A stretch of 63,908 nucleotides of DNA, the filler included, from Octopus bimaculoides (lineage: Eukaryota): the NCBI RefSeq assembly GCF_001194135.2. It is 6 parts of 5 records of this genome, joined end to end, with 100 filler letters (N's around TTAATTAATTAA, not from the genome) between each part and the next. Parts side by side here need not be neighbours in the genome. Positions count along the whole stretch, not along the records: positions 39,806 to 52,245 come from NC_069007.1; 5 more parts are not named here. The stretch is one strand, 5' to 3'. The position numbers were made by a program, and so were the translations under genes. Below, piece by piece: positions 39,346-52,245 of this stretch (positions are counted from its first letter, which is position 1; each line of letters begins with the position of its first letter). Below the pieces are notes generated by a model. That model was given only the letters and a program-made list of their open reading frames with translations. It did not search any database and was not told the DNA's origin.

Positions 39346-39883
39346 TTTTCTTCATAATCTATCAAAGTTTTCCATCAAGCTAGAATGGTACCAGATTTAG
39401 ATAAAGTGGAGTTCCTTGTGACAAATATCGCAGCCTTATTTAACAGCATGAATTTCATGCATAATTCTGAAGAGTCGATGTTCGATTGTATTAGTGTGAT
39501 ACCTCAGGAATGTATGGTTGAATTTATCATATAATAATATAGCAATACACATGAAATCGAATATGAATGAAGCAATAACGATTTGCTGCAACCATTCTCC
39601 TTGTGAATAATTACATACATACATACATATATACATACATACATATATACATACATACATACATACATACATCCATACATACATACATACATACATATAT
39701 ATATANNNNNNNNNNNNNNNNNNNNNNNNNNNNNNNNNNNNNNNNNNNNTTAATTAATTAANNNNNNNNNNNNNNNNNNNNNNNNNNNNNNNNNNNNNNN
39801 NNNNNGTTCGTGTATGTGTGAATGCGTGCGTTCATGTGCGTGTATGCGTGTTTGTGTTTGTATATATATATATATATATATAT

Positions 39884-40025
39884 ACGACGGGCTTCTTTCA
39901 GTTTCCGTCTACCTTGGTCGGCCCAAGGCTATAGTAGAAGACACTTACCCAAGGTGCCACGCAGTGGGACTGAACCCGGAACCATGTGGTTGGTAAGCAA
40001 GCTACTTACCACACAGCCACTCGTG
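39884..40025 (-). mobile_element. tRNA-derived SINE (family A)
   Basis: Reverse complement: gagtggctgtgtggtaagtagcttgcttaccaaccacatggttccgggttcagtcccactgcgtggcacc...gacggaaactgaaagaagcccgtcg(TA)n. Confidence 0.9.
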
Positions 40026-40592
40026 CGCCCATACTTAAACTTAACCATAAACTAACTTTTATAGAATAATGAGGTTTAGGGAGTGGCAATATATGTGAGC
40101 AGGTGCTTGCATGAGTGTGTTTTAATTGCGAGTATAAAAACCTGAAATTTACAGGTCATCGTAGGGTCAACCAAATTCTAGCCTTTTACCTTTATAAAGA
40201 TGGATAATTAAAAGTACTGAGTGTTTTGCAGAAAACTTTGGTTTTTGTTATTGTCCAACCCATGCTAGCATGGAAAGCGGACGTTAAACGATGATGATGA
40301 TGATATAGGTTGAAATGAGATGATAGTAGAAGGCACATGCCCAAGGGACTGCACAAAGGGACTGAATTGAAACCACAAAGTTGCAAAGCAAATTTCTTAA
40401 GCACACAGCCATGCATATATCTGTTAGCAACTCTCAAAAGATAATTTTAAAAAGGCATTTATTTCTCAAATTTGATTTACATACTTTTGGGAAAAATCTG
40501 ATTTTTGTAGATAAAAAAAGGGCAATTATTTATGTTACATTATTTACATTATTTACATTTGACGGATATTTGTCCTCATCTTGTTTGTTGTT

Positions 40593-40638
40593 AACACAAC
40601 GTTTCGGCTGATATACCCTCCAGCCTTCGTCAGGTGTC
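40593..40638 (-). ncRNA. Minimal type I hammerhead ribozyme-like motif
   Basis: Stem I GACAC/GUGUU, core CUGACGA, extra A, stem II GGCUG/CAGCC, GAAAC-GUU. Confidence 0.6.
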
Positions 40639-40711
40639 TTGGGGGAAATTTCGAACCTGGGTTCTCATTCCTAACGACGTTACTATTATTAAAAGCACCC
40701 ACTACACTCTC

Positions 40712-40870
40712 TGAGTGGTTGGCATTAGGAAGGGCATCCAGCTGTAGAAACTCTGCCAAATTAGATTGGAGCCTGGTGTTGCCATCCGGTTTCACCAGTC
40801 CTCAGTCAAATCGTCCAACCCATGCTAGCATGGAAAGCGGACGTTAAACGATGATGATGATGATGATGAT
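40712..40870 (+). mobile_element. SINE family C (ends ...ggaaagcggacgttaaacgatgatga)
   Basis: Same tail at 40250-40300 and on the minus strand at 49914-50060. Confidence 0.85.
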
Positions 40871-40995
40871 TATTAATCAGGTCGCTGCCGTGAATCGAAC
40901 TCGGAACCTTGGGGTTAGTAGCCCGCGCTCTTAACCACTACGCCATATGCCCGTGGGCAATTATGGGGTGAATTTTAAGGCTTATAAATCTATTA

Positions 40996-41150
40996 GAGAA
41001 CCCAGGTTCGAAATTTCCCCAAGACACCTGACGAAGGCTGGAGGGTATATCAGCCGAAACGTTGTGTTAACAACAAACAAGATGAGGACAAATATCCGTC
41101 AAATGTAAATAATGTAAATAATTCCTCATCTCTTAAATATAGAACTGAAT
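40996..41150 (+). mobile_element. Inverted tail copy of the hammerhead-bearing element
   Basis: Near-perfect reverse complement of 40540-40670. Confidence 0.9.
41023..41068 (+). ncRNA. Minimal type I hammerhead ribozyme-like motif
   Basis: GACAC CTGACGA A GGCTG gagggtatat CAGCC GAAAC GTT GTGTT. Confidence 0.6.
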
Positions 41151-41725
41151 TATTTATGTGTTCCAGTTTATTGGACCCCCATCAGTGTACTATAGTTGCT
41201 GCTTTTACTGTATTGTTTTCCTCATTGTATTTTCAATTAATGATATTAGATAATGGAATCCTAGATATACTGTGTTTCAAAGACAGGATGGTCATGGCTG
41301 AAAGGTCTTTGATCATGTCTATTTCATCAGGAGTGTCCTTGGACTAGAGAAATAAATCCACAAATTGCAAAGTCTTCTGAATATGCTGGATATATTGTTT
41401 TAGTAAATAAAGATTCTAATATTCAAAATAAATGGAAGTGGAGAGACAAGGTACTGAAGAGATTGCAAAAGTGCAATGAAATAATTTAACAAAAAACTAT
41501 ATAAATTAATAAAGGACTGAACCAGTGCGTGTGTTTATTACCGGCATAATGCCTCTCCCAAGGTTTAATAATATTGTTTGTGTTATTTAGAAAACTCAAT
41601 ATATTTAATATGCTTACTACAAAAGCTAAATTTGAAAATATATGTAAACAATTAAGAAGATTAATTGCTAGACATTAATGTAATTTCAAACTTAGATAAT
41701 CAAAGATACATGTTTGTGCTACTGC

Positions 41726-41757
<32 letters not shown>

Positions 41758-42093
41758 AAAGAAACTAAAAAAAAAAAAAAAAAAAATGGACAAACTTCAC
41801 CATAGAAAAACATTTTTGGCAAGGTAAGCAGACTCCTAACTGAAATCTGGTTGTAATAATCCCAATTGTACAGTTTATCAGAAAAATAGTAAATTGATAA
41901 ATTTTAATATAGGTTAAGATACAGTAACTGACAGCAAAGATTAGGTAAAGAACTGATCCAACTCACTTTAACTCTTGAAATATTGGAGAACAAATTAATC
42001 CTATTTCTTTCTCAAAACACACACAACAGCAGACTTCATTACTGTTTTTATACCAACATTTGGTAAATCAATTGATATATCCAATTCTTCTTA

Positions 42094-42099
42094 TTTATT
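42094..42099 (-). terminator. Candidate TERT polyadenylation signal (AATAAA)
   Basis: AATAAA on the minus strand about 290 nt past the TERT stop; AT-rich context makes chance occurrence likely. Confidence 0.25.
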
Positions 42100-42387
42100 A
42101 TTTCTGTAATTTAATTGTTACCATTCTTCTGTTTGATAATTTTGGATAAAATTTCATTTTTTACTTTGGTCAAAATTTCGTTTTTTACTTTGGTCATTTT
42201 CTTAAGATGGTAGTTCTTTTCAGCACATTTGGTCAAAATTCTATTTTCCCCTTTGGAAATATCAAATTTTCAACTCTTTTATTTGGTAACTGTGGTCAGT
42301 ATTTCAACATGTTCATTTGTCAAGTTTGCTTTTCTTAGTTCTCCAGGTTGGTACAATTATAGATATTCTGGAAAGTTCCTCAGTGTC

Positions 42388-42465
42388 TCAGTCTAAGATG
42401 TTCTTGAAATGATCTGAAACACCAGATTCCTTCACTTCCATAAACAGTTTGTATCTCTTCTTGCT
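42388..42465 (-). CDS. TERT: TERT terminal exon
   Basis: atatcag|AGC...GACTGA; SKKRYKLFMEVKESGVSDHFKNILD* resembles the conserved TERT end DFKTILD*. Confidence 0.93.
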   Translation of the reverse strand, partial: SKKRYKLFMEVKESGVSDHFKNILD

Positions 42466-45400
42466 CTGATATATGATAAAAATATTTTTAAAACAAAAAT
42501 AAATGAAAATAATTATTTAAATCATTTACACATACACCACACATACTACACACACACACACCACAGGTACACTATTGTGTACCTGTGGAAAATCCATAAG
42601 TAATACCTGTTCAGTTTTACTGTAATTAATTAAAGGGGTCACTTCAATAAAATATGTTTCTTTTTATTATTTAATAAATTAACAAAATGTCCCTATAAAT
42701 GTAAATACATAATGATATATAACTTATACATGGCCACTTTAGTCTCCACTGGTGACTTTATCATTTACTTGTTTCAGTTATTGGGCCATGGCCATGCTAG
42801 GGCACCACCTTGAAGAGTTTACTCAAACAAATCAGCCCCAATACATACTGGTCCCTTCTGACGAACCACTAAGTTACACAGGTGTAAACAAACCAACACT
42901 AGTAGTCAAGGGGTAGTGGTGGGGAACAAAAGAAACAAAGACATACACACACACAGTTTCCATCTATCAAATTCACTCAAAAGGCATTGGTTGGTCCCAG
43001 CTACAACAACAACAACAGCAACGACGACGACGAAAAATACCTTAAGAATGAGAACCCAGGTTTGAAATCTCCCCAAGACACCTGATGAAGGCTGGAGGGT
43101 ATATCAGCCGAAACGTTGTGTTAACAACAAAGAAGATGAGGACAAATATCCGTCAATTGTAAATAATGTGTTATTGTGTCATTTCATTGTTTTTAACATA
43201 GTAAAGTCTGATTCACAATACTACCGTGTTGGAACTTACCAGGAGGTGTTTTGTCTGAGTAAAATACATCTGCAGCAGGTTACGAAGTTTGTGATATTGA
43301 CTGCAATTGCAGGACAGTTTAAGATCAAATGCCATGAAACACAACCTACATCAGGATAGAAAGATGAAAATAAAGCGGATTGTAACCCATTTATAACCAT
43401 ATTTCAATTGAAATACACTGCACTTGTTTCAAATAATTTTGAAAATAATGAAGAATTTATTTAAGAAATGTCAGGCACAAGAGTGGATGAGTGGTAAGAA
43501 GCTTGATTCGCAACCACATGGTTCCAGGTTCAGTCCCGCTGTGTGGCATCTTGAGCAAGTGTCTTCTACTATATGAAATTTTTACAAATTGATATTAATA
43601 ACTATTAGTCATTAAATAATCTTATTCTTAACAAAGATTTTAGTTTTGCTATGAAAAATTCTAATTTTAATAAAAAAAATTGATATAAATTGATGGTGAA
43701 AAGAACATCATCCCTATAAAATCCATCTCTTACTTCAGAAAATTCTCTATGTACACAGTTAAGAATGTAAATGCCCCCTAAATCAGTTACTGGTGCAGGC
43801 TTGCTGGACCCCAAAATAATGTTGAAATTAGTGGATCTGTCAGTCCTAGCCCAGTACTTTCCACTGAATTCTGTTATGGAATGTACTAGACTAGGCTGAT
43901 AGACTTGATAATTTTGACATTACTGTAGGGTCAAGTAACTGATACAATGAGAAAGAGAAAATTTGCACATATGCATGTGTGTGTTGGGCAGGTGTATGCT
44001 AATGAAATTTCTACATACCATTTATTCTCTAGTTTGTTCAGTGGGTAGCAGATTGTGCCATTCATCTGTAAAATGATAACAACAGTATTAATAACAACCA
44101 GCAGTAGCCCCCCCCCCCACCTTGGAAATGTGTGCCCCTTGTGCATATACTGTAAACCATTATCACCTTCATCATTAGTTTTAGATTGGTAGAATCAACA
44201 GAGCGACAAACAAAATGCCAAGATGTACTTAGTCATATTCTTCACTTTCTGGAGTTCTAATATTGCCAAGGCCATCTTTTGCTTTCATGTTTCTGGGATT
44301 GGGGAAGGGGATGTGTATCTCTTAAAACCAGTACCAGTCATATATTGAATGCGAGTAAATCAGTTACATCTCTTTCCTACTTTGACAAGTCTTTAAGAAA
44401 TGACTGGTATTAATCATTAACACTATAGAGTATTTGAAAACTAGGTTTTGGGGCTGCTTTGAGAAAATTCATAGTAATGGCATTCTGCCGATTCCAACCA
44501 TTTTCAGACAACTCTGTCGATTTTTCCATAAGTATAAGAAGGGATTTTGTTTATATGTGTTTGACTTTCATATCTGAAGACAACATAGCAGGTGAGAGGT
44601 TCCAATTAATATCATTGGTGTTAACAAATCATTGTTGCTACTCAGGTGGAATGCTTTTCAGGTAAAAAATGAAGGCACATCTTTAGTTTACCAAAACATT
44701 CAATGAACTGATGAGGAAGCCTAAGTAACCTGCTAAAAATAGTAACCAAATCCCACTTAAACCACTGAAGTCTCTTAAAAGAATAGAACATATTCGACAA
44801 TGTAGTGCTAGATATGCTAAAAGAAATTTGGATGGTCACAGATGGAAAACCTTTTAGTCATAAATCTACTTGATCAGAACTGACCTATGGTTAAAAAAAC
44901 ACCTAAAGCTCCATGAGGCTCCGGCAGGGGATGGTGGCGAACCCTGCTGTACTCTTTCACCACGACTTTCTCTCACTCTTTCTTCCTGTTTCTGTTGTGC
45001 CTGTAATTCAAAGGGTCAGCCTTGTCACACTGAATATCCCCGAGAACTACGTTAAGGGTGCACGTGTCTGTGGAGTGCTCAGCCACTTGCACGTTAATTT
45101 CACGAGCAGGCTGTTCCGTTGATCAGAGCAACTGGAACCCTCGACGTCGTAAGCGACGGAGTGCCAACAATGAAGGCCTACATACTATTCATATCTTTTT
45201 TATTATTGTTCTAGTCATTTGTTCTTAATTTCATCATGTTTTTATCTAAAAGTCTGCCACAAAAGGGAATGAATGACAAGAAAAATCAGCATATCTTTGG
45301 CAGCCATTTGAGTAAAATCTGTATGTGATAGGACAAAAACTAAAAACAAGTAGACAATCATCATTTACTTCATTTAAAAATGCATGTAACCATTGGCCTA

Positions 45401-45566
45401 ACCCTCACCACTCATCTATTTCCTTATATTAATGTCTGAACATACTGACCTTTATCATATAATAATATATTTGTTGTTCGAAATAGTCAGCAATTTCTTC
45501 AATGCATTCTGGAAATATATTTGTATAACACAATAAAATAAGCACATACATACATACATATATAAA

Positions 45567-45603
<37 letters not shown>

Positions 45604-47650
45604 TCTTTTATTCTTTTACTTGTTTCAGTCATTTGACTGTGGCCATGCTGGAGCACCACTTTTAGTCGAACAAATTGACCCCCAGGACTTATTCTTTGTA
45701 AGCCTAGTACTTATTCTATCGGTCTCTTTTTTGCCAAACTGGGAAACATGTCTAGCCATGGGAAATATTACCCTACTTGGAAACAGGTGAGGGTTGGTGA
45801 CATAGTGGGTGTAGAAAATCCATTACAACAAGTTCTGTCTGGCTCAAGCAAGCATGGAAAAGGTGTCCTAACAGTGTAGCTAAGAAATTAATTTTGCATC
45901 ATATGGTTCCAGTTTCAATTCCACTGCATGGCACCTTGGCTATGTTTCTTCTATGATAGCTTTAGGTTGACCAATGCCTTGCAAATGGAATTTGGTAGAT
46001 GGAAACTATGCAGAAGCCTTTTCTATACAAATGTGTTGTGCATATACACAGATGTGTATTTATGTGTACTCAAGTTGTAACACTAGGATTGTTTTGAATT
46101 TTATCTCTTTATGTTTTAGGTATATCATAAACATGGTTGATATGATACTTAGATCAATATGATCAATTAAAATTTTGAAAGCAGTGCTCTAGTATGGCCA
46201 CACGCCAATGACAGAAATCATTATCAATAAAAAGAATAAATTTAAAAAAAGCCAATATAAAGCAATAAAGAGAAATTATTTTTGAAAAAGCTTACCGAAG
46301 AAGAAATTTAGATTTGCTGCCACACGTCTGTTAGAGGGTAATCTGCAGACATGAGTATGGAATCGGCAAGCAATCAGGTAGAAGATATCAAAGACATTGT
46401 TGATGATTGTTCCAAGAGTGTTGATCTAGAGTAAAGTGAAAATAAGTAAATAAAAATAAATAAAGAAGAAAAAAATAAAATGTATAAACATTTCTGTTAC
46501 AGCATGGCAGCTCTTTATTTACTGAGTCAGGAGGAAGGGGGCAGTATCCATAACATTTGCAATTTAAACCCAGGTCAACTTTGGGCTGGTAAATCTATTG
46601 TAATGATTCCAATGGGATTGCTCATTCCTAGGTAATGTGGTTAGCCAGGACCCAAACTCTACTTGAGTGCTCGTACAGTACTCGCTTGGATAATTTATCC
46701 CTATATACTCATCGTGTGCATATATATATATATATATAAAGGAAAATGAAAAATAAGGCAGAATGCTAAACTGGAAGTATATTTTAATAAAGATTTCTCT
46801 AACCGGCTCTCATTGCATAGCAAATTTTCAAGAAGAAGGAGAATGAAAATGTTTTTTTACAAAGAAGTACAAAATGAAGAAAATAATATATNNNNNNNNN
46901 NNNNNNNNNNNNNNNNNNNNNNNNNNNNNNNNNNNNNNNNNNNNNNNNNNNNNNNNNNNNNNNNNNNNNNNNNNNNNNNNNNNNNNNNNNNNNNNNNNNN
47001 NNNNNNNNNNNNNNNNNNNNNNNNNNNNNNNNNNNNNNNNNNNNNNNNNNNNNNNNNNNNNNNNNNNNNNNNNNNNNNNNNNNNNNNNNNNNNNNNNNNN
47101 NNNNNNNNNNNNNNNNNNNNNNNNNNNNNNNNNNNNNNNNNNNNNNNNNNNNNNNNNNNNNNNNNNNNNNNNNNNNNNNNNNNNNNNNNNNNNNNNNNNN
47201 NNNNNNNNNNNNNNNNNNNNNNNNNNNNNNNNNNNNNNNNNNNNNNNNNNNNNNNNNNNNNNNNNNNNNNNNNNNNNNNNNNNNNNNNNNNNNNNNNNNN
47301 NNNNNNNNNNNNNNNNNNNNNNNNNNNNNNNNNNNNNNNNNNNNNNNNNNNNNNNNNNNNNNNNNNNNNNNNNNNNNNNNNNNNNNNNNNNNNNNNNNNN
47401 NNNNNNNNNNNNNNNNNNNNNNNNNNNNNNNNNNNNNNNNNNNNNNNNNNNNNNNNNNNNNNNNNNNNNNNNNNNNNNNNNNNNNNNNNNNNNNNNNNNN
47501 NNNNNNNNNNNNNNNNNNNNNNNNNNNNNNNNNNNNNNNNNNNNNNNNNNNNNNNNNNNNNNNNNNNNNNNNNNNNNNNNNGTAAACACACCAGCATCAG
47601 TTGTCAAGCGATGTTGGGGGCGGGGGACAAACTCAGACACACAAACATAT

Positions 47651-47698
<48 letters not shown>

Positions 47699-49621
47699 GA
47701 CAGGCTTCTTTCAGTTTCCGTCTACCAAATCCACTCACAAGGCTTTGGTCGGCCCGAGGCTATAGTAAAAGACACTTGCCCAAGGTGTCACGCAGTGGGA
47801 CTAAACCCAGAACCATGTGGTTGGTAAGCAAGCTACTTACCACACAGCCACTCCTGCGCCTATGTTATGATGTTGATGATGATGATGATGCAACTATTTA
47901 CTGTGATGTAAACTAAATTGAAAAGCTTACCTCCTGATCCACAAATATAAGCTGACATTTTGGTTGCATGAACCTAAAATGAAAAGAACAAATATCCTTG
48001 AATGAAACAAATCTCTTATCACCTTTCAGACACAAAATACACAAATGTTCATGCAGAAATGCACATAGATATAGTCATAAACATTTAAACACACACACAC
48101 ACACAGAGTCCATTATCCCTCTAGTATATTGTTTAAAGTAAAGTGGATAAGTCTAGGAAACTGAACCTCCTCATTGGATCTATTTTCAACTAGGAGCATT
48201 TACTATTTTACTTGACGTTTGTAGAGGAACATTTGAAGGCTCTCAGAAATTAGTGAGATTGATATTATTGTTACATTTGAATTATTGGAAGTCAGCATTT
48301 GTAGGAAAGCCATGAGCAGGGAGGAGATTCTAGAGTGTCAATGTATAGTTAGTGGCTAGATTGAGTCTGGAGTGGAAGCACAATGGCCCAGTGGTTAGGG
48401 CAGCAGACTCGCGGTCATAGGTTCGCGGTTTCGATTCCCAGACCGGGCGTTGTGAGTGTTTATTGAGCGAAAACACCTAAAAGCTCCACGAGTCTCTGGC
48501 AGGGGATGTAGCAGCTGTATGATGTCTGACACATTGCAGGGTTCCTGTCACCTAACTACTCCACTCATACACCGTATCACTTACTCAGAAACTGAAAGAC
48601 TGGTTTACCTAAGTAAGCATTCTTGTAAATTAACTCCAGGATGATGTGAAAGGCCGGCGGAAACAGTGTCCGAAATAGCTGTAAATAAATAAATAATAGT
48701 AATAATAATAATTTCTTTTCTTTGCCACCAGGGTGAAGGATGAGAGGAACAATACAAAGACAGACATAAAGTGTGGGCATTTACATATAAGGAAAGGATT
48801 TAGAAAAATAAAGCATACAAGGTATACATTAAAAGAAGAGACGTATACATAGTATATGACAGTAAGAGAATTAAAAGAAAAAGGTGATAGTGATGGGGTC
48901 CTCCTCATACAGGAGGACATCTATGGATAATCAAGAAACTCCATTCAAGATCTCCCTTAATACCAAGGGCAAGTGCCCTCTCCAACCAGACTACCAGCGA
49001 CAAACACCAAACTTTTCACTAACACCTTGGCCAAAATCTTAAACTGTGTTCTGCAGAGTTACGGGCTGAAAATTCTCTAGCTTGTCCCCATTGTCAGTGT
49101 CCTTTCCGCAGCAGTGTCACCACACCCCAGCTAACAGCACTAGGAGTTCTGTTCTGCTGCCAGTTACTGTAGACGTATGCCAAGAAGATGCCAAACAAAT
49201 CTGGCATGAATACAGTATGAATACCGGCATGCATACAGTACGCCTGGTATGCATGAATATCAAATGTGAGTGTGGAGGAGAGTTTCATAACTCTCTGAGC
49301 ACCTCAGACAAGTCAAATTGATGGCAGCTCTGCTTTGTGGTAGACTTCCAAATTGGAAACACATAACCTTGCCCTAATAAGAGTGCAGTTGGGCTACAGA
49401 CTTTCCAAAGTTGTCTACAATCCCTAACTCGATCTGTAAGTCTCCCAAAAGAATATTGTTTAATTACAATCATGCTAAAAAGAATCATGTTATACTCACA
49501 GATTCCACAGTATCTGGAATAATCCTTCATAATCTCAAGAGATGTCATGTTAATCAGCAAACCACACCATGGTATCATATCTGAAATAATGTATAGAACA
49601 AAGAGTGATAGGTGGTGGTGG

Positions 49622-49653
<32 letters not shown>

Positions 49654-49771
49654 GGCAGTGGTAGTGACAATNNNNNNNNNNNNNNNNNNNNNNNNNNNNN
49701 NNNNNNNNNNNNNNNNNNNNNNNNNNNNNNNNNNNNNNNNNNNNNNNNNNNNNNNNNNNNNNNNNNNNNNN

Positions 49772-49802
<31 letters not shown>

Positions 49803-52099
49803 GGCAGTGGTAGTGACAATGATAGTGGCAGTGATGATGGTACAATGATAGCAGAAGTGGGAGAGATATTGAATGAAAGAGATATTGCTGCTAAGGTGCT
49901 GAATTGGTACAGTCATGCTAGCATGGGTTGGACGATTTGACTAAGGACTGGTGAAACCAGATGGCTACACCAGGCTCCAATCTGATTTGGCAGAGTTTCT
50001 ACAGCTGGATGCCCTTCCTAACGCCAACCACTCTGAGGGTGTAGTGGGTGCTTTTACGTGTCACCGGCACGAAGGCCAGTCGAGCGGTACTGGCAACGGC
50101 CACGCTCAAAATGGTGCATTTTACGTGCCACCCGCACAAGAGCCAGTCCAGGGGCACTGGCAACAACCTCGCTCGAATGACTTTTCACGTGCCACCGATC
50201 TTGGATATTCCATGGGGCCAAGAGTGACAATGTCTGCTTGAAATTGCATAGGTACTTACAACAATTAGTGCTGTACATACTATCATACTTACAAGTGACA
50301 GCTACAGCTTGTGTGTGTGTGCATGCGCACATACATGTGAATTTGTGCATCAAACAAATGAGATTATTGCAGTATTTAAATTTTTAGTTGTCTCTTTCTA
50401 CGAAAGGTGGACCAGCCATTCAGTAAATAATGACAGCTAAAACAAGCCCCAAGTTAAGTCCTTGTAGGTACAAACAAAGACTAAAACTCTTCAAGAATGT
50501 GTCTGCCTGAGTCGAAACACTGAAACAATCAGTAAAAGAAATATAAAGAAATAATTTTTAAGAAATGGTCAACTTACCTGTCTGTTTAAGACGCTGTAAC
50601 CAACCGTATTTCTGATGATTATAGTGGAAATTGATGAACAGTTTGTCATGTTGAATGTGACAATTATACTTGGAGACACCTGAAATAACACTGCTTTTAT
50701 CATTTTCAAGTTTAATTTTTCTGTGTTGAATGGGTTGGGCAAAATTACTCCAGGAAGGAGATCCATCACCAGATCCCTTTCTTGAAACCAACCCATTTTT
50801 AAAATTATTTTTCGAGTAATGTACTTTATTCCATGTCTTTTCCCACCTAATCACCAAGTTGCTGGACTTTTTCTTTATGTGCAACATAACATCCCATCTA
50901 GTAGCAACGAAAACATACCCACACACACACTTTCCTTCCAGGTACTGAAAACAGTCCCCTAACCATCTAGTCACTCTTCCTATCAAGTCCATAACTTTAG
51001 GCTACTACGATCAATGCTGACACAATGAAAAGTAGGTCTGTAGAGATTGCAAAAATGCTAGAGCAGAGGCATGTAAATGTTTTGCATGCAGGATGTATGA
51101 TGGAGATGGTAGGGGCCTCAACTAAACTCCTACTAGGCAAGGAACAAAGCTATAAATTCTTTTGGGTAGTGATGGTGTGGTTAGAGTAGGCATAGTATTT
51201 TTTTATTCAATTTTTTTAGTTCGTTATGATATGTGGTTTGCACCTGAAGAATATGTTTGAGTATTTCTCAACATATGAAACTATTAGTAGTGCTTAAATA
51301 TATATGCTGCACTCTTTAAATAAGTAAAATCTATCTTTCACCAGATGGAGAACTTTTTTTTTGTTGAATTTTCTATCATGGAACAGTACATTATATATGT
51401 GGAGGCGCAATGGCCGAGTGGTTAGGGAAGCGGACTCGCGGTCATAGGATCGCAGTTTCGATTCCCAGACCGAGCGTTGAGTGTTTATTGAGTGAAAACA
51501 CCTAAAGCTCCACGAGGCTCCGGCAGGGGATGGTGGCGAACCCTGCTGTACTCTTCCACCACAACTTTCTCTCACTCTTACTTCCTGTTGTGCCTGTAAT
51601 TCAAAGGGGCCAGCCTTGTCACACTGTGTCATGCTGAACATCCCCGAGAACTACGTTAAGGGTACACGTGTCTGTGGAGTGCTCAGCCACTTGTACGTTA
51701 AATTCACGAGCAGGCTGTTCCGTTGATCGGATCAACTGGAACCCTCGACGTCGTAAGCGACGGAGTGCCAACAACTCCTTCTATGCAACTATCCAAACAC
51801 ATATGTACTGCATTACACAATCTATCTTGTCATCATATGTCTACAAATTGAAGAATGAAAAAACAAAGAAATACAAGCAAAAAGCAATCACCGGTGAGGA
51901 ATGTCTCCAGGAAGTTCACTGCCCTTGACTCGTCTGGTGTGACAAATAAGTAGTCATCTACCAACCGCATCATCAGATCATCACTTTTCCCTTTCAGCAT
52001 GGTTTTTTCCATGTGGCCATAATAGAAACTACATAGCAGTGTTGACAGAACAGAGCCCTGGCTGATACCTATTTGCTGCAAGTAATATCTGGAATTAAT
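42388..52099 (-). CDS. TERT: Telomerase reverse transcriptase, 3' half (10 exons, 307 aa: RT motifs B'-E plus CTE)
   Basis: Spliced translation: INSRYYLQQIGISQGSVLSTLLCSFYYGHMEKTMLKGKSDDLMMRLVDDYLFVTPDESRAVNFLETFLTGVSKYNCHIQHDKLFINFHYNHQKYGWLQRLKQTDMIPWCGLLINMTSLEIMKDYSRYCGISISDTVSAGLSHHPGVNLQECLLRFMQPKCQLIFVDQEINTLGTIINNVFDIFYLIACRFHTHVCRLPSNRRVAANLNFFFECIEEIADYFEQQIYYYMIKMNGTICYPLNKLENKWLCFMAFDLKLSCNCSQYHKLRNLLQMYFTQTKHLLSKKRYKLFMEVKESGVSDHFKNILD*. It is collinear with human TERT landmarks (GIPQGSILSTLLC, LLRLVDDFLLVT, GVPEYGC, FPWCGLL, LKCHSLF, LQAYRFH, WLCHQAF, DFKTILD*). All introns are GT-AG with matching phases. Confidence 0.96.
42760..43010. mobile_element. Degenerate composite SINE
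   Basis: cttgtttcagt...ggccatgctagggcacc...aaccactaagttac...cagtttccatctatcaaattcactca matches motifs at 45620-45740, 47582-47760 and 56680-57060. Confidence 0.6.
43077..43122 (+). ncRNA. Minimal type I hammerhead ribozyme-like motif in a TERT intron (antisense to TERT)
   Basis: GACAC CTGATGA A GGCTG gagggtatat CAGCC GAAAC GTT GTGTT, within a third tail copy at 43030-43170. Confidence 0.6.
43240..43345 (-). CDS. TERT: TERT exon: CTE
   Basis: cctgatgtag|GTTG...CTG|gtaagt; WLCFMAFDLKLSCNCSQYHKL resembles [21 protein letters not shown]; 106 nt, phase 2 to 0. Confidence 0.94.
43474..43572 (+). mobile_element. SINE family A head, truncated
   Basis: gagtggatgagtggtaagaagcttgattcgcaaccacatggttccaggttcagtcccgctg. 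Confidence 0.8.
43600..43850 (-). pseudogene. Penelope-like element RT fragment
   Basis: NFNIILGSSKPAPVTDLGGIYILNCVHREFSEVRDGFYRDDVLF resembles PLE FDVTMGS.DGAE.CELVG.YIL...GLYRDDGL. Confidence 0.65.
44019..44065 (-). CDS. TERT: TERT exon: CTE
   Basis: cattttacag|ATG...AAATG|gtatgt; MNGTICYPLNKLENKW; 47 nt, phase 0 to 2. Confidence 0.85.
44893..45170 (+). mobile_element. SINE family B, 5'-truncated
   Basis: Matches the 24278 and 51399 copies from aaacacctaaagctcc to ggagtgccaacaa. Confidence 0.9.
45450..45508 (-). CDS. TERT: TERT exon: CTE
   Basis: tatttccag|AATGC...AAG|gtcagt; ECIEEIADYFEQQIYYYMIK; 59 nt, phase 1 to 0; fills the required phase gap. Confidence 0.82.
45620..46025. mobile_element. 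Adjacent SINE fragments
   Basis: cttgtttcagtcatttgactgtggccatgctggagcacc...(45620-45740); family A-like copy at 45870-46025. Confidence 0.7.
46296..46425 (-). CDS. TERT: TERT exon: CTE
   Basis: ttactctag|ATC...TTCG|gtaagc; INTLGTIINNVFDIFYLIACRFHTHVCRLP resembles [30 protein letters not shown]; 130 nt, phase 0 to 1. Confidence 0.94.
47582..47857 (-). mobile_element. SINE family A with composite tail
   Basis: Reverse complement has the family A head gagtggctgtgtggtaagtagcttgcttaccaaccacatgg. Confidence 0.88.
47931..47973 (-). CDS. TERT: TERT exon: CTE
   Basis: ttcattttag|GTTC...GAG|gtaagc; FMQPKCQLIFVDQE resembles LRLKCHSLFLDLQ; 43 nt, phase 2 to 0. Confidence 0.9.
48372..48512 (+). mobile_element. 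SINE family B head
   Basis: gtggaagcacaatggcccagtggttagggcagcagactcgcggtcataggttcgcggtttcgattcccagacc. Confidence 0.85.
48609..48678 (-). CDS. TERT: TERT exon: start of CTE
   Basis: ttatttacag|CTATT...CTTAG|gtaaac; SISDTVSAGLSHHPGVNLQECLLR; 70 nt, phase 1 to 2. Confidence 0.88.
48770..49460 (-). pseudogene. L1/Tx1-clade LINE RT fragment in a TERT intron
   Basis: FGRLTDRVRDCRQLWKV, MPDLFGIFLAYVYSNWQQ, SAVSWGVVTLLRKG, GDKLENFQPVTLQNT.FKILAKVL. Confidence 0.8.
49500..49580 (-). CDS. TERT: TERT exon: motif E
   Basis: ttatttcag|ATATG...ATCT|gtgagt; DMIPWCGLLINMTSLEIMKDYSRY; 81 nt, phase 1 to 1. Confidence 0.95.
49914..50190 (-). mobile_element. SINE family C with short internal tandem repeats
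   Basis: Reverse complement of the 40712-40870 tail, plus repeated acgtgccacc...ggcactggcaac units. Confidence 0.8.
50578..50679 (-). CDS. TERT: TERT exon: motif D
   Basis: ttatttcag|GTGTCTCC...ACAG|gtaagt; GVSKYNCHIQHDKLFINF resembles GVPEYGCVVNLRKTVVNF; 102 nt, phase 1 to 1. Confidence 0.92.
50995..51200 (+). pseudogene. RTE-type APE endonuclease N-terminal fragment in a TERT intron
   Basis: RATTINADTMKSRSVEIAKMLEQRHVNVL...GASTKLLLGKEQSYKFFWV. Confidence 0.65.
51399..51774 (+). mobile_element. tRNA-derived SINE family B, full length
   Basis: A/B-box head, body and tail as at 24278. Confidence 0.92.
51892..52099 (-). CDS. TERT: TERT exon: motifs B' and C
   Basis: Acceptor tttttctttccaacag|ATT; encodes GISQGSVLSTLLCSFYYGHME and LMMRLVDDYLFVTP; donor ACCG|gtgatt; 208 nt, phase 0 to 1. 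Confidence 0.95.
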
Positions 52100-52198
52100 C
52101 TGTTGGAAAGAAAAAACAATGGATGACAAACCCCTTCCAGCATCATAAGGGTAGCAAAAATTGAAGGAATAAATTATTAAAAAAATAATCTTTTTAAA

Positions 52199-52245
52199 GG
52201 GAGTGGCTGTGTGGTAAGTAGCTTGCTTACCAACCACATGGTTCT
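52199..52245 (+). mobile_element. SINE family A head running into a gap
   Basis: gggagtggctgtgtggtaagtagcttgcttaccaaccacatggttct. Confidence 0.85.

Follow-up and report, generated by a model that had tools for sequence, protein, structure and literature searches.

The sequence analysed here (hereafter the window, 63,908 nucleotides (nt), filler included) comes from Octopus bimaculoides (NCBI RefSeq assembly GCF_001194135.2) and joins six parts of five records, of which positions 39,806 to 52,245, derived from NC_069007.1, form the piece discussed below. The minus strand of this piece carries a segment of the gene for telomerase reverse transcriptase (TERT), composed of ten exons (E1 to E10) lying between 52099 and 42388, whose in-phase splicing gives 924 nt encoding 307 amino acids (aa) followed by a TGA stop at 42390-42388. 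A first-pass annotation of the region had proposed ten in-phase exons encoding 307 aa, free of stops and frameshifts, and our model reproduces this count together with the exact outer coordinates, 42388 and 52099. The segment very probably represents the last ten exons of an octopod TERT, amounting to the final ~31% of its coding sequence. It had previously been described as the 3' half of the gene, which is right as to the end concerned and too generous as to its extent, since what is present corresponds to the last ~31% of the protein (about residues 668-973 of the 973 in Sepia).

All exon acceptors are AG dinucleotides preceded by pyrimidine tracts and the nine donors are all GT, with introns of 635-1505 nt and intron phases, from the start of E1 through the start of E10, of 0,1,1,1,2,0,1,0,2,0. 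E1 (51892..52099; 208 nt, phase 0 to 1; peptide INSRYY...ETFLT(G)) contributes motif B' (QQIGISQGSVLSTLLCS, 52078-52028) and motif C (LMMRLVDDYLFVTP), with the catalytic VDD at 51961-51953 confirmed by direct translation. Motif D, including its conserved lysine, lies in E2 (50578..50679; 102 nt, phase 1 to 1; (G)VSKYNCHIQHDKLFINFHYNHQKYGWLQRLKQT), and motif E in E3 (49500..49580; 81 nt, phase 1 to 1; (D)MIPWCGLLINMTSLEIMKDYSRYCGI), where direct translation again confirmed the PWCG at 49572-49561. The thumb, or C-terminal extension (CTE), begins in E4 (48609..48678; 70 nt, phase 1 to 2; (S)ISDTVSAGLSHHPGVNLQECLL(R)) and continues through E5 (47931..47973; 43 nt, phase 2 to 0; (R)FMQPKCQLIFVDQE), which has strong splice sites and pairs with human LRLKCHSLFLDLQ, to E6 (46296..46425; 130 nt, phase 0 to 1; INTLGTIINNVFDIFYLIACRFHTHVCRLPSNRRVAANLNFFF), which holds the core of the Pfam TERT_C domain. 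It is completed by E7 (45450..45508; 59 nt, phase 1 to 0; (E)CIEEIADYFEQQIYYYMIK), E8 (44019..44065; 47 nt, phase 0 to 2; MNGTICYPLNKLENK(W)), E9 (43240..43345; 106 nt, phase 2 to 0; (W)LCFMAFDLKLSCNCSQYHKLRNLLQMYFTQTKHLL) and the coding part of E10 (42388..42465; 78 nt; SKKRYKLFMEVKESGVSDHFKNILD plus the stop codon), whose C-terminus ...DHFKNILD* was likewise confirmed by direct translation. In the six-frame translation these exons appear only as fragments: a 134-aa open reading frame (ORF) at 51833-52237 on the minus strand carries QQIGISQGSVLSTLLCS...LMMRLVDDYLFVTP, and it is followed, in the expected order, by motif D (GVSKYNC...KLFINF), motif E (IPWCGLL), the CTE core (INTLGTI...ACRFHTHVCRLP) and the C-terminal ...DHFKNILD*.

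The identity of the product as TERT was established by profile and protein searches with the spliced peptide. Human TERT (PDB 7qxa) aligned in one stretch (E=1.1e-46), its residues 822-1131 of 1132 pairing with query positions 3-306, and the human thumb domain 5ugw matched residues 143-307 with E=1.6e-13. For the Pfam domain TERT_C (PF21399), of which profile positions 2-127 of 130 were covered, the score was 72 bits (cut-off 27), and the generic RVT_1 profile scored 29.7 bits with the full spliced product, against a cut-off of 29.6. The palm motifs B', C, D and E are intact and in canonical order (QQIGISQGS, LVDDYLFVTP, NCHIQHDKLFINF and IPWCGLL), aligning column by column to human TERT 822-935 and to mollusc TERTs; the earlier claim that these motifs, with the VDD of motif C and the whole CTE down to the conserved stop, were all encoded here is thus borne out. 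Every one of the 15 PDB matches of the spliced product at E<=0.001 is a TERT. Moreover, an unindexed HMMER search of 1.84 billion representatives gave 1459 matches at E<=0.001, and the top matches whose names were checked were all TERT or unnamed proteins; the named ones were the TERTs of Octopus vulgaris (the best), Sepia pharaonis, Tegillarca and Saccostrea, together with an Argonauta protein. On these scores the match to TERT is far above chance level.

Since the piece is rich in interspersed repeats, the exons resembling reverse transcriptase might instead derive from a retroelement enzyme, for example of a Penelope-like element or a LINE, and the E1 peptide taken alone gave a merely sub-threshold RVT_1 score (21.5 bits). 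However, the same E1 peptide matched human TERT with E=3e-14, and 14 of its 16 PDB matches were TERTs, the two weakest being the exception; the sole reverse transcriptase of another kind among them was AbiK, at E=0.13, and all significant PDB matches were TERT. The retroelement origin is further contradicted by the TERT-specific C-terminal domain PF21399 at 72 bits, by introns common to oyster TERT and by a locus orthologous to that of O. vulgaris TERT (both described below), so that it deserves virtually no credence and is already refuted; the earlier assignment to TERT rather than to another reverse transcriptase stands. In a word-indexed protein search E1 alone returned only three exon-sized fragments, because the indexed collection contained no full TERTs bearing this exon. 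E8-E10 alone gave no significant PDB match (E=0.86), and their alignment is gapless to both C-termini.

The exon chain was assembled by enumerating stop-free AG...GT intervals and tracking their phases. The first hand-built chain encoded 331 aa, with 49243-49168 as E4 and 44816-44692 as E7, and both of these exons proved wrong. This longer chain as the true structure has in its favour that it is in phase, has GT-AG boundaries and no stops, and still matches human TERT with E=1.7e-40 (TERT_C 62 bits); the decoy at 44816-44692 even resembled the human segment 'LCYSILKAK'. Yet the two minus-strand decoys align poorly and are unused in the orthologues, without counterpart in the 202-aa O. vulgaris protein, which matches 48678-48609 (SISDTVSAGLSHHPGVNLQECLLR) and 45508-45450 (ECIEEIADYFEQQIYYYMIK) instead and allowed the true E4 and E7 to be pinpointed; E4 was also among the intervals listed by the enumeration. 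With the corrected exons the human alignment reaches the C-terminus, its E-value improves to 1.1e-46, the TERT_C score rises from 62 to 72 bits, and lengths and phases equal those of O. vulgaris and oyster, respectively, leaving scarcely any probability for the 331-aa version. That two in-phase, stop-free decoys were wrong means that phase and open frame alone are weak evidence for exons of 40-130 nt.

Other candidates were also set aside. The ORF at 49302-49240 ('KLSSTLTFD', like human SIRASLTFN) has neither an in-phase donor nor an orthologue counterpart. Omission of E8, joining 44747 to 43345, is in phase, but the TERT_C score falls and the profile match ends at position 80, while inclusion of E8 raises the score and stretches the match to profile position 127 of 130. 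Finally, 'LYQFFLLKL' at 43685-43662, considered as the HQAFLLKL helix, was dropped in favour of E9.

The closest relative of the gene is found in O. vulgaris, a different species from the source of the window (dS, the synonymous divergence, of about 0.26). The protein CAI9741689.1 (UniRef100_A0AA36BX92, named telomerase reverse transcriptase in UniRef) is 83% identical to the product over 202 aa with zero gaps, and no protein more than 83% identical was present in the 15-billion-protein collection searched. At the O. vulgaris locus (OX597840.1, here L002) all ten exons are found with lengths and GT-AG boundaries identical to those described above, including the E1 acceptor ...ccaacag|ATTAAT and the 208-nt length of this exon. 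Nucleotide identity ranges over 81-94% among exons (E2 81%, E3 94%, E4 93%, E9 92.5%) and is 88% for the whole coding sequence. Repeat insertions aside, the two loci are colinear, and the 3' flank remains alignable with 82% identity over ~690 nt; the introns of O. vulgaris are longer, the exons spanning about 14 kb there versus 9.7 kb here. The first-pass annotation had considered a cephalopod origin probable, which this identity and colinearity confirm and narrow specifically to octopods.

The current O. vulgaris annotation splits TERT into two models (L002 1-7337 and 10001-21111), encoding an N-terminal protein of 634 aa and a C-terminal one of 202 aa. The upstream model, which has the PF11474 TEN_TERT and PF12009 Telomerase_RBD domains, adjoins the 3' part of the gene, and the 202-aa model has TERT_C and begins at a methionine inside E3. 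The motif D exon E2 (L002 8618-8719) is in neither model. In addition, E3 of O. vulgaris (L002 9996-10076) encodes PYCG where the O. bimaculoides product, Argonauta, Sepia, bivalves and human have PWCG, a change at a residue conserved in all other TERTs compared.

The comparison between the two octopuses also bears on whether the gene is active. Over 921 nt there are 109 differences, distributed among codon positions 1/2/3 as 41/21/47, which gives a nonsynonymous divergence (dN) of 0.099, a dS of 0.264 and a dN/dS of 0.37. Every exon is free of indels, and splice sites are likewise conserved. When neutral evolution was simulated 5000 times under the observed transition bias, the frame stayed open in only 1.7% of runs, and the observed aa identity of 80.5% was reached in 0.02%. 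These data support moderate purifying selection on a gene that is predicted to be active. The synonymous divergence of 0.26 lies above the apparent divergence of the introns.

Certain points weigh against an active gene. The exon nucleotide identity of 88% is no higher than the 89-92% of alignable intron flanks (e.g., 51002-50574 and 44373-43689), and the constraint is therefore to be regarded as moderate. The piece covers only the 3' third, the exons for TEN, TRBD (T, CP, QFP), motifs 1, 2 and A and IFD lying upstream of 52245, outside it, where an inactivating lesion could conceivably lie, and the splice junctions rest on orthologue proteins and genomes. The segment could accordingly be imagined as part of a decaying or non-functional TERT copy, intact-looking in this part, a view to which the dN/dS of 0.37, which is not strong constraint, and the visibility of only a third of the gene would also lend themselves. 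Nevertheless, such a pseudogene would have to combine 924 nt devoid of stops and frameshifts with 18 of 18 canonical internal splice sites at positions identical to those in O. vulgaris, intact catalytic motifs and a deficit of second-codon-position changes, and the neutral simulations seldom keep either the open frame or the aa identity. Colinearity with O. vulgaris TERT, introns included, moreover means that it is not a processed copy. A pseudogene is on this balance quite improbable, and the segment is better read as part of an active TERT. The earlier statement that the gene appears functional is thus upheld for this part only, by its open frame, conserved splice sites and dN/dS, the upstream two thirds lying outside the piece.

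A related proposal is that octopod TERT is under unusually relaxed constraint, because exon divergence equals intron divergence, dN/dS is 0.37 and PWCG has become PYCG in O. vulgaris. We consider this unlikely, if a little less so than inactivation of the copy, and the data behind it fit ordinary fast TERT evolution equally well.

Beyond octopuses, the aa identity of the product is 49% with the Argonauta protein, 47% with Sepia TERT and 36-40% with bivalve TERTs. The full-length TERT of the decapodiform Sepia (Acanthosepion) pharaonis (CAE1228151.1, 973 aa) aligned without gaps over 307 of 307 residues, at ~668-973, with 47% identity, and shares the GISQGS variant of motif B'; alignments to the Octopus and Sepia proteins are gapless at the nine exon junctions. 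Human TERT (PDB 7qxa, 7trd and 7bg9; thumb 5ugw) is colinear with the product for B', C, D, E and the CTE (residues 822-1131), at about 35-40% identity, with GIPQGS in motif B' versus GISQGS here. The FK.ILD terminus is common to both (human ...DFKTILD). The corresponding part of the human gene has 8 exons versus 10 here; only the E5/E6 intron presumably matches a human intron exactly (intron 12, codon 990/991, phase 0), and the E7/E8 intron would lie at most one codon from human intron 14.

The splitting of this part of the gene into many short exons, regarded in the first-pass annotation as a highly fragmented structure, is real as far as the ten short exons are concerned, but it is not special. 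When the Saccostrea echinata TERT (XP_061163693.1) was mapped onto its own locus (L003 26680-31634), its 3' third was found to consist of ten exons with all ten phases, 0,1,1,1,2,0,1,0,2,0, as in O. bimaculoides, although the protein is only 36% identical to the product. The suggested comparison with a bivalve was therefore positive, the oyster carrying all ten intron positions in identical phases. Six exon lengths are equal between the two genes (208, 81, 70, 43, 130 and 47 nt), while oyster exons 2, 7, 9 and 10 are 3-9 nt off. Intron-rich TERTs have been described previously, with 27 introns in the Pacific oyster and 29 in a sponge versus 15 in human, from which an intron-rich metazoan TERT ancestor was inferred, cephalopods being outside that study (Lai et al. 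2017, PMC5405514). Since the oyster has ten exons with identical phases, the fragmentation is ancestral for molluscs, and the octopus structure is a retained ancestral one, nothing special to this lineage. Phase has been preserved at the nine internal intron positions and at the one upstream of E1 ever since bivalves and cephalopods diverged. The gene is thus an ordinary TERT orthologue, and neither the gene itself nor its many short exons are unusual.

Two assembly gaps fall within the segment. The first, of 100 N, lies at 49672..49771 inside intron 2 (50577-49581), within a (TGG/TGT)n microsatellite, and is flanked by identical 49-mers (49623-49671 and 49772-49820). It therefore probably reflects overlapping contig ends left unmerged, a scaffolding artefact rather than missing sequence, and intron 2 is probably about 149 nt shorter than drawn. 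The second gap, of 690 N, lies at 46892..47581 inside intron 5 (47930-46426), and the E5 and E6 that border this intron are complete, in phase 0/0. The exons beside both gaps are complete and match those of O. vulgaris in length. The E2/E3 and E5/E6 junctions align without gaps to Sepia and human, and E5/E6 also to O. vulgaris, whose protein fragment begins in E3. No coding sequence was lost to the gaps, and the frame is independent of them.

Downstream of the stop codon, the first AATAAA on the minus strand (42278..42283, 104 nt away) is a candidate polyadenylation signal. The 2.6 kb that follow TERT show no sign of a further gene; in O. vulgaris its next neighbour is a DUF1295 gene on the other strand, starting about 7 kb past the TERT stop. 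Interspersed repeats and microsatellites abound in the introns and in the 3' flank, several families recurring often in the O. vulgaris locus. Repeats at 47582-47868, 39861-40033, 43473-43573 and 52200-52245, and also at 45606-45741, occur in both orientations and are partly preceded by (TA)n; these interspersed families each have at least 8 matches, 77-94% identical, in the 31-kb O. vulgaris locus, and are thus abundant octopus repeats, probably resembling short interspersed elements (SINE-like). Another repeat, of ~380 nt and on the plus strand, has copies in TERT introns 1, 4 and 6 (51399-51774, 48372-48457 and 44896-45170, respectively). Its head, GGCCCAGTGGTTAGGG...GGTTCGCGGTTTCGATTCCC, looks tRNA-like by eye, with motifs resembling A and B boxes, and was called by neither ARAGORN nor Rfam. 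ARAGORN reported zero tRNAs in the piece, and Rfam gave only sub-threshold matches to microRNA families (mir-297, mir-3149 and mir-1277, with 29-38 bits versus gathering scores of 81-100). All of the latter, at 39806-39876, 45528-45613 and 47629-47705, coincide with (TG)n/(TA)n microsatellites and represent chance matches.

The gene is best explained as a probably single-copy octopod TERT transcribed from the minus strand, the spliced segment providing the second half of the reverse transcriptase palm and the complete thumb. Its exon structure, reading frame, family membership, orthology with O. vulgaris TERT and agreement with an oyster in all intron positions and phases are shown by the data above; what each motif does, and that the enzyme is active, is inferred from the TERTs of human, Tetrahymena and Tribolium. 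Motif B' would take part in nucleotide and template handling, and the two aspartates of the motif C VDD would bind metal ions and carry out catalysis. Motif D would provide its conserved lysine and motif E (PWCG) the primer grip, while the CTE would hold the DNA-RNA duplex and aid repeat-addition processivity. Acting with the telomerase RNA and with the parts encoded upstream (TEN, TRBD and motifs 1, 2 and A), this segment would allow telomere repeats, which in molluscs have the unit TTAGGG, to be added to chromosome ends.

In summary, the biological weight of the finding is small, as any cephalopod genome should contain a TERT and the intron-rich structure matches that published for oyster. 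If constraint on octopod TERT were indeed relaxed, this could mean that these short-lived, semelparous animals depend on telomerase less or in a different way. What is new here is confined to a gene model that is correct where the octopus annotation is fragmentary, and the value of this model for annotation arises because the nearest protein is 83% identical, the O. vulgaris TERT is split in two and the motif D exon is omitted there. The ten-exon 3' model could help to repair the annotation of octopod TERT and to design primers for cephalopod studies of telomerase and ageing.

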